DNA of 64,000 nucleotides from assembly GCF_003918875.1 (NCBI RefSeq), contig NW_025765636.1:682001-746000 (forward strand). The letters are read 5' to 3'. The DNA is from Haliotis rubra (lineage: Eukaryota). Each line of letters begins with the position of its first letter. Within the stretch, counting starts at the first letter, position 1. The notes below the pieces were generated by a model that saw only the letters and a list, made by a program, of their open reading frames with translations, was not told the DNA's origin and did no database searches. The translations under genes were made by a program, and so were the position numbers. Below, piece after piece: positions 4,042 to 59,422 of the stretch.

Positions 4042-4529
4042 TATGATTTGAAGAGACACATGAGAGTCAAACATTCTGATGAATGCCAAAGTGTGGTTCC
4101 ACTGACGCTGACGACGACGCAGCAGCAGCAGCAGACACAGCGACACCACCATAAACTAACTACAACTACACACACAAACACATACCACCACACACCGCCA
4201 CACGCTACACGCTACCACCACCCACCACCATCACCATCACCCACCACCACACACCACCAGACACCACCACACGGTAGAGAGATGTGTATAGTGTTTTTGT
4301 AGATTTCAAGAGACATTTGTATATAGATTGTAATGGTGGATTGGGGAGGCTCTCCGACCCATGCACGGGGATATTAAATATTGTGTATAGAAGTTGTATG
4401 TTGTCATTGTTTATTTCGCTCTATAAATGTGCATTTGTGCAGGCATGTGTCATTACACAAACGGACGACAATGAGTTTTTTTCAACATTGCGTCGGCCAT
4501 GCTATGGAGGAAACAAGGAATGCAGCAAA

Positions 4530-16134: not shown

Positions 16135-16376
16135 TTGGTTGGTTTGTTGTTTAACGCCACACTCAGCAATATTCCAGCTATGTGGCGGCGTTCTGTAAAT
16201 AATCGTGTCTGGACCAGACAATCCAGTGATCAACAGCATGAACATCGATCTACACAGTTGGGATACGATGACATGTGTCAACCAAGTCAGCGAGCCTGCC
16301 CACCCGATCCCGTTAGTGGCCTTTTACGACCAACATGGGTTACTGAAGACCAAATCTAACCCAGATCTTCATGGGT
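16135..16376 (-). mobile_element. SINE family A
   Basis: Homologous to 1458-1693. Confidence 0.85.
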
Positions 16377-17940
16377 TTGAAAATTTGAACTAAAACGTTT
16401 GTAAAAGAACTTCCCGTAAATACGTGAAGACTAATAAAATCTTGAAAATCTGGTACAAATAATTATCATTAGTTCAAGTCACGTATTCCAGTTATATCCC
16501 AGCGTGTCACCATGTCGTGCAGAAAGGTCAACGTGACGCATGCGCAGGTCTTGGACGTTTACTTCATTAGTGAAACCCGGTTATGGTGCTGATAAAACCA
16601 CCAAGGATCATAACCGGGGCGATCACAGAGTGGAATCCATGATCATAGGCTTCTGGCGTGCCAAAGGGACGCAACTCTGTTTAACGAATTGCGCCGCAAC
16701 AGACGAGTTGGTCACCTGTGGTCCCTTCAGACGTATTTGTAGGTATACTTCCGGATGCAGTAACAAGTCAAATTGACAACGCCAATTAGTAATACTGTTT
16801 AATTCAAAATGTTTTCACAAATAACAATAAGACGAGTTTGATAAACATTGCATAAAATATGAAAATACTGCTACACAACGTGAACCTGTCCATGACAATC
16901 ATGCATATGTGTATATGTATACATACCACCTCATGCAAATACACCGATTATCCAGCGTATCCTATCTCCTTTCCATCCCAATAGATACCATATACCCATT
17001 CGCCATCATGCTTTCGTCTTGAGCCTGGTTTGAATGGCACTCATCTTAACATTATGAGAAGAAACAGCTGATATCAACAGAAATGATTTGCTTTGTTTCG
17101 TGCTGTATCAGGCAAAACTTGGTTTCGCGTGAGGGCATTCCTCCCCGTCTTAATACTCAATAGACCATTAGCAATCTGATAAATCAAACCTTAGTTATCT
17201 CCAGACAAAGATATCCTATCACAGCTAGGTCATGTCAAGTGACCGTTTGCGACCGTTCGATTGACCGACCGTTGAAATTATATCTACGTGTACATAATCC
17301 AATCAGAAAGCCGATTGCTCAACTAATACGGCACCTGTTTCAAGGGTCGACTAACATTCACGACTAAAGTTTGAAAATATTTTAACTAAGTTCTCATTCC
17401 AAATTTGAAAATTGAAAAATAGAATAACATTCTGGAATGTCTCATAGATGACCGACATTGTAAGGCAGTTCTTTTCGAGGAATATGCAAAGTCCCTTCCG
17501 TTGAAATGCTTATCCTATTTAACCGTGAGATGGAAGTCAGATGTTTTTGAAGTATTCATTCTTAGTGTCAGTAACTGTCGTTCGGAATAACCCGTGTTTA
17601 CCTTTTTCGAGGTTGCATGATATGAAAGAAAACATTCCGACTGTTTCTTCCCTGATTTTGGTTTGCGACGTCCTGATTGGTCGAATAATAGGTCGTTCTG
17701 ACGTGACCCGTATACATGTATACATGAGATATTATTAGACTTTAAGGAAGATCATATTTTAATGAGACAACACCATTACCAGCTATAATTAGATATGTTA
17801 CTGCCTCATACCATTGATTGTATCGATAGCTCTCTCGCACGAACGCGAATTTTGAACGATAATCTAGACTGAACTCGCTTTCACAAGGGGTATTTTGATT
17901 GGTTGCTCATGAACGGGAGAAAGTTATTCGTGACCCACTA

Positions 17941-19825: not shown

Positions 19826-20275
19826 GAGAGTGAGTTTAGTTTTACGCCGCACTCAGCAATGTTGAAGCCATTTGGCGGCCGTCTGTAAATAATCGAATCT
19901 GGACTAGACAATCTAGAGATCAAGAGCATGAGCATCGATCTACGAAATTGGGATACGATGACACGTGTCAACCAAGTCACGAGCCTTACCACCCGATCCC
20001 GTTAGTTACCTCTTACGACAAGCATGGGTTACTGAAGATTAATTCTAACCCGGATCTTCACGGGTTATTAAGAGAGCGTGTACGAGTACGATTACGTTGT
20101 GGTGAGATTTGTTTGTTTGTTGTCTTACGCCGCATTCAGCAAATGTCCTGCGACATGTAAATAATCCAGTCTGGACAAGACAAGACATGAGCATCGATCT
20201 ACGCAAATGGAATACGATGACATGCATCAACCACGTAAGAAAACCTGGCCCCCTGATCCCGTCAGTCGCCTCTTT
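19826..20275 (-). mobile_element. Two adjacent SINE family A copies (19826-20066 full, about 20105-20275 partial)
   Basis: Homologous to 1458-1693; in intron 2 of the TMEM97-like gene. Confidence 0.85.
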
Positions 20276-20287
20276 CGAGAATCGTTA

Positions 20288-20459
20288 GGGGCGGTGGGGT
20301 AGCCTAGTGGTTAAATCGTTGGCTCGTCACGCCGAAGACCCGGGTTCGATTCCCCACATGGGCACAATGTGTTAAGCCCATTTCTGGTGTCCCCCGCCGT
20401 GATATTGCTGGAATATTGCTAAAAGCGGCGTAAAACTAAACTCAGTCAGTCAGTCAGTC
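20288..20459 (+). mobile_element. SINE family B
   Basis: TAGCCTAGTGG and GGTTCGATTCC boxes; TSD GAGAATCGTT. Confidence 0.9.
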
Positions 20460-24290: not shown

Positions 24291-24402
24291 TTCAGCTTTA
24301 GCAACACACCCAGTAGTTTTGTCTGGCACGGCTTTGCTCCAAGACTCTTCGCAATGATAAGTCCATGTGTGCACCAGTAAGTCTTTTCTTACGTGCCAGT
24401 CT

Positions 24403-24461
24403 GGCACCCCTTGAAGAGCAACCTCCTCGTGGTGGGTGCTGGGTAACGCCAATGGCTCTTC
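24403..24461 (+). ncRNA. HDV-like self-cleaving ribozyme fold at the LINE 5' end
   Basis: P1 GGCACCC/GGGTGCT (G1-U wobble); P2 GAAGAGC/GCTCTTC; P3 ACC/GGT; L3 TCCTCGT; P1.1 CC/GG; minimal P4; J4/2 GCCAA with the C75 equivalent at 24449. Confidence 0.85.
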
Positions 24462-25079
24462 GCCCCCGTGTGGACCCGGGGTCGAATAGGTCCACAGCAC
24501 CCCATTGCTGGTTGTAAGAGGCGACCAAATTGGGCAACCCGTTTGCCGTGGGTTGCACCCCTGTGTCGGCAGAGGAAGGGAGTCTGGTGGTTGAGGATGA
24601 CGGAACCGGCAATAGTGTTCAATAATCCAACACACCACTTTGACCCTAACTTTGCCTAGACGGGTGGTAGAATAGGCCCGATTCTACCAATCGGCTGGTC
24701 ACGCCTTGCCCTGTGCATGGAATGTCTATACAAAACGTGGTATTACATAACACTTTTGACCATGTTCAAAATGTTAACAAATATTCCACCAAAACAAACT
24801 AGCCTCGCAGACCCATGCACAGAAGGCGGTGGCTCATGGGCCAATCTGGTGATGCTGACCTCCGATTTCTGTACGTCTCCAATTGATTGTCATGGACAGA
24901 ACCATCCTGACCTTTAATCTGGTAGGCAGCTACAGCATTTCATGTCAAATTCGCTGGAGTATAACACCCCCCTTATCCCTGGTCTTTGCAGCTTGGAGAC
25001 CCGCTGCAGTATAAGATCGTCCTTGTTGACACTCCACGGTGGGTGGGGAGAGGGGATGCTGAACCACATTACTAACGAC

Positions 25080-30029: not shown

Positions 30030-30841
30030 CTGTGAAATGTAACAACCATAAATTGTAACTATGAAATGTAACAAACCGCCTGCCTATAAATTTGATGCTA
30101 TGATTTTTTCTGCTTTCGAATGACAATGCAATAAATAAATGTCTTTGAAATAAAACTCATTCCGAGTATGTACTTACAATATTTACTAATGCAAACTTGT
30201 TCTCGTCACTATATGGCTGGAAAAATGCCGATGTGACGTAAAGCTCAACTCAACTCAACTCAACTAGATAAGCGGACAGTAACCCAGTGTACTATTTATT
30301 ATTTTTTAGAAATTATCATTTAAACTATTAATTTATAAGAGACTTGTGCAAGTCTACGTATTGTAGAACGTGTTATCCTGCTAACGAAGTCTGAAAAACA
30401 TACAACCAGCATTGACATTTTCCTCATGGAAATGAATTTAATAATCTTTTGTGAAAGTATTTCAAGCATCCCCAACAAGTGAGGGGTTAATTGGATTTAG
30501 CCCCCGATAGTCTCAACAGCCATGAACAGGGAACAGTCCTTGGGTGTAGGTTAGAGTCACGTCAAGACGAGCTTGTTCTAACAGAGCGCGATGTTATCCA
30601 GAAAACTGTAGAATTTTATATAGTAACAGACCCTGAAACAAATTATCCAAGAATTCCCATGCAAGTCTAGAATATGTAGCAACTCCAGATTTCCACAGTT
30701 TCTGAAAATGAAGAAAGTCTCTGGGCTCCGTTTCATTATATTTTATGATAATTTAACAGTTTTTTTTCTGTAAATATCTTCATTTCAGAGACTAGATGTT
30801 AGTCTCAATTTTATACATACGTCAGAATAAACCTTTTTAGG

Positions 30842-34749: not shown

Positions 34750-34957
34750 TGTTTAGTTGTTTATTTAAAGCCGCATTCAAAACAAACATTCATCTATGGA
34801 GGGTGATGTGTAAACATTCAAGTCTGGATCAGACAATCCTGTGATTGACATCATGAAAGGGAATCAGGCAATGGGATGTATCCCCGAAGTCAGCGACCAC
34901 GTTGGCACGTTTAACTCAAAAGTATAGGAGACTAATTCTAACCCGGATCTTATCGGG
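34750..34957 (-). mobile_element. SINE family A, degenerate
   Basis: Partial homology; approximate ends. Confidence 0.7.
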
Positions 34958-51314: not shown

Positions 51315-51525
51315 TGTTTGTTGTTTACCGCGATACTCAGCAATACTCGACAGCAGTCTGTAGATAATCGAGTCTGGACCAGACAATCCGGTGAATGGCA
51401 TCATCAACATCGATCTACACAGTTGGGACAACGTAGATGACATGCACCCACCAAGTCATCGTGTCTTTTACTTATTACGACAAGCACGTTTTGCTGAAAA
51501 CCAATTCTAACCCGAATCTTCACAT
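51315..51525 (-). mobile_element. SINE family A, degenerate
   Basis: Partial homology; approximate ends. Confidence 0.7.
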
Positions 51526-52561
51526 TATAAGAGCATGAATATCAAGATGGCAAGTTAGAGTAAGAACTCAAACCATTCGAGTGAGTGAGTGTTGCGTTAC
51601 GCCGCTTTTAGCAATGTTCCAGCCATTATCACGGCGGGGAACACCTGAAATGGGTCGAACCACTAGAAATGATTATCGATATTCGATATGATGTATAAGA
51701 AAATGATTTCAGAAACATGCTGTGTTAAAGTTAAAGAGTCATGAGGTTATTCCACAGGTTCGAATATAATACGCACTTACCTTGGGTTATATCACATGGG
51801 TGTTGGTAATATAGCATGCGTTGTTTGGTTTAATTTAAATAACACTGTGGAACTCATTTCCTGTTTAGAGAACCCAAATGTTATCTAAAATTATGTTACT
51901 CAAAAAGGGATTTTGACTGGATTCATTTTTTATCAAAGAACAAACAGAAAACTCAACAACAACTAAAAACCAAATAAAAAAACCCTAAAAACCCCCAAAA
52001 GAACCCCCAAAAATCGAGTGTATCAATTTCTTTCAAATTGCAATTTTTATTAAGTCTTCAGCAGTCTCTTAAATATAAATTTAATAAGAAACTCCAACTT
52101 CGTATTGACTTATTTTTAGAAGTAATAACTTCAATGGAATAGTGTAGTGTTGAGAAAGAACCTGACAAATTCAGGCCCTAGCAGAGGCTGGGTTAGTTTT
52201 GGACGGGAACACAGATTGGGTACAAGAACTGAATTGGGGAAGAGATGAGGGCTCAGTGACCCGGTCACCGCGTCACAGGAAGGTGGTTTCAGAGTCAGAG
52301 AGATCCTCAAAGCGATCGTAGCCCTACGTCGTTCGTAAGCGTGCTTCATTTAGGGATTTACATTACCGTTAGGGCTGGGCGGAAGGGAAAGTAATATGTT
52401 CAGGGAGTGAAAGACAGACTAATTGTCAGGGAAAGAGAGGCTTTCGGGCTGGGTTGGGCACCGAGACAACATCATTTCAAGAGAGGCAATTGAGGGCAAG
52501 GGATATAGCAAAATGTTCATGGATAAAGAAACACTGAGCTGGTTCCGGGAAAGTGGGAACC

Positions 52562-55947: not shown

Positions 55948-58074
55948 TCATAACTTGATGCAGATAATCGTACCGCTTTTACGAGAAATGTGTAGAGAAT
56001 GTCCAGATTCAGTTCTTTTAACAGAGCATATAGTTGTACATGTAGAAAGCAGTTTGTTATCTGCTTTTGTTCAGCACTTTTCCATGAAAAATCAAAAATG
56101 TTTTATGCACCATTCAGGTGTTCCAGTTAAACTCATAAGACATAAAAAATGTCAAAAACTCAAGGATACGTAGTTGAAATTACAATATTATACAATGGGT
56201 GTATAAAATATATATAAAGCTCAAGAAGTATTAATAATTTAGTTTATATGTTCAAACAAGTGTATAGCGTGTCAGCTTCAAGTAGCTATTCACGAAAGTG
56301 TTCAGTACTATGAAAACGCACAGAATACTAGTATATTTATTCTGAATTTTAGCGACGATAATCAATGCTATGTCACTTAAAATTATGATATGAAAGTGAT
56401 TATCAAATGTGAGGCTCAATAGATGCACTGCTAAAATGAGTGTCACTCGTACGCCAAGTTCATCACATTTTATTGTGGCCAACCACGCAAAAAATAACTC
56501 AACAACTCTAAACGTAAACACATCATCAGCTGTCAGTCAAGCGTGACACGAGCAACAGAAAGGTCGCGATGACCACAAAATGCCAAGGTTCTGCTGGGAT
56601 ATCCACCAGCCTCGTTCTCATTTCACCGTGACGTCACACTTCGTCTTTGTCGGGAGAAATTCCCCACATATCGAGAGATTCCCCAGCCTGAAATGGTGTA
56701 TATTTCACGAAATCCTTGTGTTTAGGACAAGATGTGGTAACGTACGATATTTAGACATTATTATCATGGTAACTACCTGACAGACAAGCTCGGCCAAGGC
56801 GGATTTAGCCCTGAGCTGAGTGGAAAATCTCGGGGATGCCACGTAGGAAATCAACAACTCTGTCCGCCTCGCCTCTCAAACGTAAGTAGGCCTAATGTTT
56901 TATGATAATTTTTGAAACCGAGCTTGGCAAATAACGTTGCTGTCATGCATGTGTCTATATATCCTTGCTTTTGAAGTACATGTAGTCTGATATTACACAC
57001 GAGGGGTGGGAGGGTTATCTTTTTCACCTCGTTTTGGGGAAACACCTCCAATATTCGACAGGGGTTACCCTTATTAGTTATGCATTCGCCCGCAACATCC
57101 GTTGGCTAATTCAGTAAAATGGCTTTACTAACAGCTTTGAATCTTAACGTGTGTGTAATGTTCGTATCTCTTTGAATGTAAACGTGTGTTCAGTGTCAAC
57201 AAGCTTTAACTTATGACACATATTCAGCGAAAACATTGCTGTTGCGAGGTGGTAATGGCGTTCTAGATGGAAGAGTCGACATAGCAACGTCGAGGGTGAG
57301 CGGGTTTCATGTGGCTCGTGGATCTATAAATAGCAGAGACAAGCATTCCTGCACAGGTTGTCGCGGGGTGTTCCGCCGAGGTCGCAGCACGAAAACAACA
57401 TATTTATAGACTGCTGAATAGTGGGTAATGGGTCCGCGTTTCGTAAAATCAGCTTAATGTACAACGGTGATATCAAACCTGAAAGTAGGACATGAAAATC
57501 TTAATTGTTAATCTTGACTTAACGTTAATGAGCAGTTTCCAGTGATCAGAAAGGCTAATCGTATGCTTTAAACCGGAATAAGATTGAATATTATCACAAA
57601 ACGATGAGAGAATCTATACCTTTATGGAAAATAATGCAATAAGGAAGTTTTTTGTGAGATTTAACTTATGGAAAACATCTAAATGCAGACATGAACAACG
57701 GTATGAAACACTCCCAATATTTAGAATAGGATATTGTAATTTTATGCAAACAAGGAGACACCGAACGATCTCGTGTTAGCTCTTTCAAGCTAACATGGTA
57801 AAAGGCGACAAACGGGATCGGGTGGTCAGGCTCGCTGACTTGGTTGAGTGCGGCGTAAAACTATATTTACTCACTCTCTCACTCAAGCTAACACAGAAGT
57901 TTCATTTCTTCTAAATGAGTGAGTTGCGTTTTACGCCGCTTTTAGCAGTATTCCAACAATATCACAGCGGAGTTTACCCAGGAGGGGTTTCACGGTCCAC
58001 ACATTACAACCATGTGGGGAATCAAACCCGGGACTCTTGACATGGTTGTTCACTGGGAACCCAAGACCATTTAT

Positions 58075-58618
58075 TTGATGTTCAAGACGGCACTCAGCAA
58101 TATTCCAGCTGTATGGCGGCGGTCAGTAAATAATAAAGTCTAGACCAGACAATCCAGTGGTCAACATCATGAGCATCGATATACGTAGTAAGAATCACAG
58201 GGGCGTGTCACGCTTAGAAACGGCGTTAGAAAGACATATAGGTATATAGATCCTACCCTAGTACTATATAAAAGGATATAAGGCGTGTCACGCTTAGAAA
58301 CAGCGTTAGAAAGACATATAGGTATATAGATCCTACCCTAGTACTATATAAAATGATATATAGTACTAGGGTAGGGTCTATATACCTATATGTCTTTCTA
58401 ACGCTGTTTCTAAGCGTGACACGCCATAGTACTAGGGTAGGATCTATATACCTATATGTCTTTCTAACGCTGTTTCTAAGCGTGACACGCCCCTGTGGTA
58501 AGAATAGGATGACATGTGTCAACCAAGTCAGCGAGCCTGACCACCCGATCCCGTTAGTCGCCTCATACGACAAGCATGTGTTGCTGAAGGTCAGTTCTAA
58601 GCCGGATCTTCACGGGTA
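58075..58618 (-). mobile_element. SINE family A split by a foldback insertion
   Basis: The two halves flank 58196-58497. Confidence 0.8.
58196..58497. mobile_element. Modular foldback element with 8-bp TSD (P/hAT-like termini)
   Basis: CACAGGGG...CCCCTGTG; TSD GTAAGAAT; two direct plus two inverted ~69-bp modules. Confidence 0.85.
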
Positions 58619-59222
58619 CCCAAGACCGAAATGAAATTTAATCTACTGTATACTGATTACTGAAGTCCACACTCTATGCTATTTATCGACTTACTGACTG
58701 AATGTTTGCCGTTACGTAACACCATCACTCATTGTCATGATTATAAGAGAAATCAAATTATATTGTATCTATTTATGCGCAAAGTTAACGGCTGTCAGGA
58801 CCAGTTTATATGATTTGAGGATCTTGACAAGACGTATTCAAATATGAAGTCAACATAGCATGTAGCTTGGGTTTATAAGCACAAGACCTTTCGAAGAGTG
58901 CACGTGAGCAAGTTTGATATTTAGTAATGTTGATTAAATAACGTTTATTTAAATGTAAGTATATTAAATATCCCAAAAGCCTAAATCCAATGTATTTTAT
59001 TGGTGGCGCAGTGGTCCACTCATAAGAGCGCTCTCTCATCACGTCGAAGCACCGGGTTCGATTCCACAGGTTTCATTCCTCGCATGGGTACAATGTATGA
59101 AACCTTTTTCGGTTTCCCCTGTCGTGATGTTGCTATAACGACAGAGGAATCTAGCTTTGGCACTCGGTATTACGCCTATTTTACTCGGCCACTGAGTTCT
59201 GCTGTTACAGTATGCTGTAACA

Positions 59223-59420
59223 TTGGTTGGTTGGTTTGTTGTTTAACGCCGCGGACCAGACAGTCCGGTGATAGACAGCATGATCATTGATTTAAGCAGT
59301 TGGGATACGACGACATGTGTGAGCCAGGTCAGCGACCCTGACAACCCGATCCCGTTAGTCGCCTCTTACGACAAACATGGGTTGTTGAAGACCAATTCTA
59401 ACCCGGACCTTAACGGGTCC
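59223..59420 (-). mobile_element. SINE family A with internal deletion
   Basis: Homologous to 1458-1693. Confidence 0.8.
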
Positions 59421-59422
59421 AT

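Follow-up and report, generated by a model that had tools for sequence, protein, structure and literature searches.

We show here that the 5' region of an abalone LINE and the heads of the SINEs of family A share an RNA module with a predicted fold, kept by covariation, in which two H-type pseudoknots stand in tandem and are accompanied by a single conserved hairpin. In the LINE the module measures about 72 nt and lies at positions 24464-24534 of the window (the whole stretch of 64,000 nucleotides of Haliotis rubra DNA that was analysed), where the letters quoted in an earlier, sequence-only reading of this DNA agree with the window sequence. The explanation that we favour as a whole is that of a widespread, mobile module, the LP head of published SINEs, which with its double pseudoknot and hairpin would act as RNA through host machinery (probability about 0.55). 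The sequence of the module was already known; what appears to be new is the corrected double-pseudoknot fold, together with the breadth of its distribution and its occurrence in RNA viruses.

Along the plus strand of the LINE, pseudoknot A opens with the 5' strand of S1 (CCCCG, 24464-24468), which pairs with CGGGG at 24477-24481 to form the first helix. The second helix, S2, has GTGGACC (24470-24476) as its 5' strand and GGTCCAC (24489-24495) as its 3' strand, and is the hairpin stem already drawn in the sequence-only reading; its loop contains the 3' strand of S1, followed by loop 3 of the pseudoknot (UCGAAUA, 24482-24488; family consensus UAGAAUA), in which GAAU(A) hardly varies across alignment A1. 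With a loop 1 of 1 nt and a loop 3 of 7 nt, this is a classical H-type pseudoknot, and from the geometry of such pseudoknots loop 3 would pass over the minor groove of S1. Hairpin X (AGCA/TGCT, 24496-24509) adjoins the 3' strand of S2 with zero linker, and the SINE copies carry an equivalent hairpin (AGCA or AGTA with TGCT). From its loop, CCCCAT, the four bases CCCA at 24501-24504 pair with TGGG at 24531-24534 to form pseudoknot B (PK-B). Between these two strands stand the conserved hairpin d (G-GUUG-UAAGAGG-CGAC-C, 24510-24526) and an A-rich linker, AAAU, which together with the TGGG strand occupies 24527-24534. Loop 3 is A-rich in both pseudoknots.

Homologues were mostly gathered by means of the exact 15-mer of hairpin d (GTYGTAAGAGGCGAC), which was scanned against public collections and gave 120 metagenome and 61 viral loci; the whole module, beyond the 15-mer, is present in about half of them. 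As the 15-mer was the search pattern, the invariance of hairpin d in the collected loci is by construction, and its variants independent of the pattern are those of the virus L206 and of the SINE copy at 58544-58620 (GUCGUAUGAGGCGAC). A plain MAFFT alignment misaligned the stems, so that covariance-model alignments were used instead. Since these shift S1 and PK-B in divergent members, manual parsing was added, together with a helix test in which the strands are set by position alone and each family's own partner is compared with the partners of the other families.

The four helices change in sequence and stay paired. S2 is paired in 86% of the cells and seven of its seven pairs are changed on both sides across the homologues, which bears out the compensation claimed for this stem in the sequence-only reading; three pairs are changed on both sides among the LINE (GTGGACC/GGTCCAC), the SINE (GAAGATC/GGTCTTC) and the tandem units described below (GAAGGT/ACCTTC). 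The covariants of S1 are CCCCG/CGGGG in the LINE, ACCCG/CGGGT in SINE A, GCCG/CGGC in L160, GCCC/GGGC in L136 and L206, ACCG/CGGT in L080 and CCATG/CATGG in L076. Hairpin X is paired in 89% of the cells, with four of four pairs changed on both sides. PK-B, which was not fitted in alignment A3, is paired in 90.9% of the cells and has four of five pairs changed on both sides, with one column divided between UA (54) and AU (20), and its variants include CCUGG/CCAGG as against CCAGG/CCUGG, CCUCC/GGAGG, AUCUU/AAGAU and ACCU/AGGU; it shrinks to 3 bp in SINE A, and neither L136 nor L160 shows it clearly. The test of cognate against non-cognate partners (20 clusters) gave p values of about 2e-4 for S2, about 0.005 for PK-B and about 0.02 for S1, the last of these being a modest support. 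For the full model, in alignments of which many rows are related copies, 87.9% of the cells are paired, against 78.4% after shuffling and 38-55% in slid registers, and the covariation score is 0.277 against 0.142 (0 of 500 shuffles as high); the corresponding values for alignment A4 are 84.7% against 73.3% and 0.299 against 0.149. The folding energy of single sequences is uninformative (z of -0.3 to -1.4 for the LINE and SINE heads), the program being one that cannot score pseudoknots. Several metagenome repeat families (L111, L012, L029, L113 and relatives) have inserts of 45-100 nt in loop 3 of pseudoknot A, with the flanking helices intact; this insertion site corresponds to the P4 site of HDV-like ribozymes.

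The fold differs from that of the sequence-only reading, which consisted of a single H-type pseudoknot, formed by the hairpin loop with the downstream ACCCC (TAACCC in the SINE), and of a separate hairpin. A pseudoknot and a hairpin are indeed both held by the module, but the pairing as drawn fails the family-wide test. The LINE, SINE A and several other families could form this pairing, since they have two C-rich and two G-rich strands, and it could be an alternative conformer. Over its five pairs in 107 homologues, however, 58.8% of the cells are paired, a level that 150 of 500 shuffles reach (58.2% on shuffling), most of the pairs are G-U, registers slid by 1-3 columns do equally well or better (up to 77%), and cognate partners are no better matched than non-cognate ones (p of about 0.42). 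The pairing is absent in L160, L136, L076 and L168, all of which keep S1. It would also leave 2-3 nt to bridge a stem of 7-8 bp, which in classical pseudoknot geometry is too short a linker. The compensation read between GGGGT/ACCCC and GGGTTA/TAACCC comes down to one column, which covaries equally with the 5' flank. On sequence comparison both strands have better partners, CGGGG with the 5' CCCCG and ACCCC with TGGG, and we give the single-pseudoknot model very little credence.

Upstream of the module, and outside it, an HDV-like ribozyme is found at 24403-24461 on the plus strand (29 and 26 bits with the Rfam HDV models, below threshold), with helices P1 (GGCACCC/GGGTGCT), P3 (ACC/GGT) and P2 (GAAGAGC/GCTCTTC) read from the sequence. 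A gap of 2 nt separates the end of the ribozyme from the start of the module, which is placed 60 nt inside the abalone LINE transcript. Downstream of 24403 the LINE is I/Nimb-like, with broken ORFs containing zf-CCHC, APE, RT and RNase H domains. Its RNA is predicted to be cut by the ribozyme, and hence to be uncapped. In genomic contigs the LINE leader is highly repeated, and in a paralogous contig the homology to it begins near 24408; the sequencing runs used are assembled contigs, in which copy boundaries and the repetition of the leader are readable, and RNA 5' ends, strand and expression are not. One contig of 239 nt (run X2, guessed to be RNA) spans 24461-24699 and stops 3 nt short of position 24464, where S1 begins, a contig end being no proof of an RNA end. 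At the other extremity of the element, the 3' end of the LINE (30204-30265; GCCGATGTGACGTAAAG, then CTCAA repeats) resembles the GCGGCGTAAAAC motif that precedes SINE tails (e.g., at 59230-59260 and 57860-57880), which fits a mobilisation of the SINEs of the window by this LINE or a relative.

The module itself shares some features with HDV-like ribozymes: its S1 and S2 strands follow the order of P1 and P2, and the GAAUA before the 3' strand of S2 resembles J4/2 before P2. The Rfam HDV alignment (24401-24495 of the window) runs past the true ribozyme into the module, with GGGGUCGAAUAGGUCCAC as a J4/2-plus-P2-like tail, and it reaches position 24495 because of this strand order and of the J4/2-like GAAUA. 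In contrast to the ribozymes, the catalytic core (P3, L3 and P1.1) is absent between the 5' strand of S2 and the 3' strand of S1, and SINE A has an A in place of the catalytic C (GGGUUAGAAUU). The possibility that the module is part of the upstream ribozyme, or a second ribozyme, was considered and rejected, as only 0-1 nt lie between these two strands, with no P3/L3, and as the HDV scores are driven by the true ribozyme. In the Rfam scan the SINE heads gave no HDV match.

Homology between the LINE and the SINEs is confined to 24461-24541, and the two heads are about 78% identical over some 58 nt. Five copies of family A begin exactly at A-CCCG, with unrelated upstream flanks. All lie on the minus strand and were matched by the covariance models: 59345-59421 (28 bits with model R1 and 47.8 bits with model R2), 19992-20068, 16303-16379, 1619-1695 and 58544-58620, the last in a truncated element. 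The copy at 19992-20068 belongs to an element that starts at 20065, and at this first base more than 600 contigs of a genomic run diverge. Decayed copies of the head are found near 51457-51530 and 34929-34957, and tails such as (CAAC)n occur at 59230-59260. On the same strand, tandem units of 50 nt at 17-119 consist of pseudoknot A and hairpin X and are devoid of hairpin d (17.2 and 10.3 bits); the array, at 1-119 of the window, is a small satellite made from the LP head. Elsewhere, a tRNA-derived SINE head (20280-20400, plus strand) abuts a family-A-related body (20178-20278, minus strand) in the opposite orientation. Many genomic contigs show this opposite-strand joint again (19823/20065 with 20288/20444), which indicates a repeated composite rather than a chance neighbour.

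The claim that the SINE head is not derived from a tRNA stands, as a tRNA search had zero matches at the module, and no cloverleaf with A and B boxes was found there. C56 is invariant in the B-box consensus, and GGGTTAGAATTGG, read from the sequence, has an A at this position. A Pol III B box and a Pol II Inr/DPE were also sought by eye within the module, and neither match was convincing.

Family A is a Haliotis LP-SINE, an assignment made by species, position, length and description. LP-SINEs have been described in Littorina, Haliotis diversicolor, H. midae, oysters, scallops and a fruit fly (Matetovici et al. 2016, PMC4758252). Their LP head of about 70 bp is homologous to the first 68 bp or so of the 5' UTRs of the LINEs Nimb-17_LMi (locust), I-3_DR (zebrafish) and RTE-9_CPB (turtle), which belong to the Nimb and RTE clades, so that vertebrate LINEs, too, carry it; in SINEs it replaces a tRNA-derived head or precedes one (PMC4758252). 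These authors proposed a promoter and called for experiments; their report deals with no RNA structure, viruses or ribosome link (PMC4758252). Our analysis reproduces the main features of the head, namely its length (about 70 bp), its place at the very start of the SINE, its homology limited to the start of a LINE 5' UTR, and its use in place of a tRNA-derived head or upstream of one. The abalone partner LINE differs in having an HDV-like ribozyme before the module. We found no later paper on the LP head in an open-access collection of papers, in which searches with the literal sequence and on xrRNAs together with retrotransposons gave nothing relevant.

The sequence-only reading had called the module unannotated. 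This holds for Rfam 15, in which scans with E up to 10 (LINE region and one SINE copy) and up to 1 (six loci) returned the upstream HDV-like ribozyme as their sole match, but not for the literature, in which the head was published in 2016, with Haliotis included. Its further proposal that the SINE took the module and left the ribozyme behind finds no support, as in L080, Nimb-17_LMi, I-3_DR and RTE-9_CPB the module stands first and a ribozyme is lacking. The lack of a ribozyme in the other module-headed LINEs makes the HDV-like ribozyme look like an addition of the abalone lineage, as far as can be judged from these sequences.

The module extends well beyond abalones, to the start of SINE-like repeats and of a LINE in unrelated metagenome hosts. 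A covariance model built from nine copies of a single metagenome repeat family matches the LINE module with 53.3 bits (E of about 1e-14) and the SINE heads with 18-32 bits, far beyond chance, which upholds the view that the LINE 5' UTR and the family A head share a homologous structured module; a covariance-model search gave 107-111 matches in 100 sources. In this foreign repeat family the similarity begins exactly at A-CCCCG, and the 5' end of the SINE-like repeats of two hosts is the first base of S1. A decayed LINE from a termite-gut metagenome (L080) has the module at its start, behind a microsatellite, with RVT_1 and zf-RVT domains downstream and no ribozyme. Other loci (L069 at 738-900, and also L059, L088, L091 and L020) have the module fused directly 5' of a tRNA-like SINE head, which in copies of the L069 type contains A-box (TAGTCTAGTGG) and B-box-like (GGGGTTCTACCCC) motifs; ARAGORN called no tRNA beside these copies. 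A repeat of a metagenome host (L036, 1369-1518) contains two complete copies of the module in tandem.

Five lineages of tombus-, noda- or tetra-like viruses have the module in their 3' UTR. Four of them (L125, L136/L164, L160 and L168) carry it as a sense sequence downstream of their last ORF, with 30-100 nt left to the contig end. L125, which encodes an S-domain coat protein, has two tandem copies (L125 1-160, minus strand); L136/L164 encodes a Peptidase_A21 capsid; L160 encodes RdRP_3 and a nodavirus-type capsid, its RdRp being 73% identical to that of Leuven Tombus-like virus 5; and L168 encodes RdRP_3. The fifth, L206, was fetched by the homology of its RdRp (64% identity to L160) and not by the RNA pattern, and the module was recognised in it with 30 bits (E of 5e-8). 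Its S1, S2 and PK-B strands differ from those of L160 yet stay complementary. About 90 nt upstream of the full module, within the last called ORF of L206, a partial hairpin d with linker (GTCG-GAGG-CGAC-TAACG, 4440-4465) may be the remnant of a second copy.

The distribution of the module in viruses is sporadic. Among nine further relatives of the L160 virus that were fetched, one (L206) has the module, and several of the contigs stop before the 3' UTR. A scan for relatives of the L160 RdRp gave one new locus (L182), and that with the L168 RdRp gave only the contig of L168 itself (L183). A looser viral pattern (TAGAATA...GTAAGAGG....TAA) gave 17 new loci, none of which contains the module.

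The presence of the module in viruses that have no DNA stage, together with the maintenance of four helices by compensation, points to an RNA fold as the conserved object. The module thus probably acts as RNA, and a promoter is probably not its sole role. Covariation maintains the fold in SINEs whose host animals are unrelated, in LINEs from more than one clade and in the 3' UTRs of RNA viruses that are not related to one another; from this we infer that its partner is host machinery rather than an element-specific protein. The mechanism that we prefer, although only tentatively and by analogy with the carmovirus TSS discussed below, is that of a compact, T-shaped, tRNA-like fold, in which two stacked pseudoknots and a protruding hairpin would let the RNA dock with translation factors or with the ribosome. 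Such docking would give the uncapped LINE and viral RNAs a cap-independent translation, and would bring SINE RNA to the ribosomes that are making LINE protein, a recruitment for which heads of tRNA or 7SL origin are usually made responsible. Such a dock agrees with the published interchange of the module and heads of tRNA origin. One might speculate more broadly that the module is an autonomous RNA structure, double pseudoknot plus hairpin, exchanged horizontally and used either to block exonucleases or, in a tRNA-like shape, to dock on ribosomes. Its range would then take in the LINE 5' ends of at least two clades (with vertebrate LINEs added from the 2016 paper), SINE heads in molluscs and insects as well as in further invertebrates, and the 3' UTRs of several unrelated lineages of RNA viruses, a possibility that we hold with reserve.

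Nearly as likely as the ribosome dock, and itself doubtful, is a protection of RNA ends resembling that of xrRNAs, in which two triplex-prone pseudoknots at the extreme 5' end would stall 5'-3' exonucleases. This would stabilise uncapped LINE and SINE RNA and set a uniform 5' end to be copied by reverse transcription, and in viral 3' UTRs it would leave stable decay products. It would agree with the exact match between the element 5' end and the start of S1, seen in two hosts and one LINE, with the predicted ribozyme-cut, and so uncapped, state of the LINE RNA, with the A-rich loop 3 of both pseudoknots and with the tandem copies in the L125 3' UTR and in L036, tandem copies being usual for flaviviral xrRNAs. 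However, the defining feature of known xrRNAs is a ring round the 5' end; pseudoknot A is a plain H-type pseudoknot with no ring enclosing that end, and there were zero matches to the Rfam xrRNA families.

We consider improbable the published idea of an internal promoter at the DNA level, by which the 70 bp or so recruit an RNA polymerase that starts at the first base, the RNA fold being incidental. It would account for the place of the module at the very start of LINEs and SINEs, and for its position before a tRNA-like head, from which Pol III would by itself start too far downstream to include the module. It cannot explain, on the other hand, why the module is found in the sense strand of RNA-virus 3' UTRs, why it lies 60 nt within the abalone LINE transcript, behind the ribozyme, and why the compensatory changes in its four helices keep pairing and not sequence. 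A promoter role may exist in addition to the RNA role.

SINE heads are thought to derive from Pol III small RNAs, and the LP-SINEs are a published exception to this origin, explained until now only as a borrowed promoter. The borrowed piece proves to be a conserved double-pseudoknot RNA that is also kept in viral 3' UTRs, and the question moves from DNA to RNA. The sharing also points to an exchange of structured RNA between retrotransposons and invertebrate RNA viruses, and the module, compact and natural at some 72 nt, may stabilise or translate uncapped RNA. If the broader reading of an exchanged dock or exonuclease block is correct, retrotransposons and RNA viruses would here have their first RNA 'end module' in common, and the ability of SINEs to manage without a tRNA or 7SL head would be explained.

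Among known RNA systems, the closest in layout is the TSS of Turnip crinkle virus (TCV) and of other carmoviruses and umbraviruses, a tRNA-like, ribosome-binding 3' cap-independent translation enhancer that is built of coaxially stacked double pseudoknots and a hairpin and binds the 60S subunit (PMC5336357). Both RNAs have two adjacent, stackable H-type pseudoknots and a protruding hairpin, in about 100 nt for the TSS and about 75-85 nt for the module. In both, the loop of one hairpin pairs with bases that lie 3' of the hairpin after it, forming the second pseudoknot, with H4b, H5 and psi2 of the TSS corresponding to hairpin X, hairpin d and PK-B. Both also occur near the 3' end of uncapped viruses with polymerases of the tombus type. 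The first pseudoknot of the module, however, uses the 5' flank, whereas psi3 of TCV uses the 3' flank, so that the likeness is one of topology only. There is no known sequence similarity between them, and the TSS is known only in plant viruses and is not known in retrotransposons. With the xrRNAs of the flavivirus, dianthovirus and luteovirus classes, the module shares a compact pseudoknotted fold, a 5' border that would define an RNA end and a frequent tandem arrangement in viral 3' UTRs; it differs from them in having no Rfam match and no evident ring round the 5' end. The s2m of corona-, astro-, calici- and picornaviruses is a short structured RNA whose sporadic occurrence in unrelated viral 3' UTRs implies horizontal exchange. 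Although s2m has another sequence and another fold, and heads no retrotransposon, it resembles the module in being a structured RNA scattered sporadically through the 3' UTRs of unrelated virus families.
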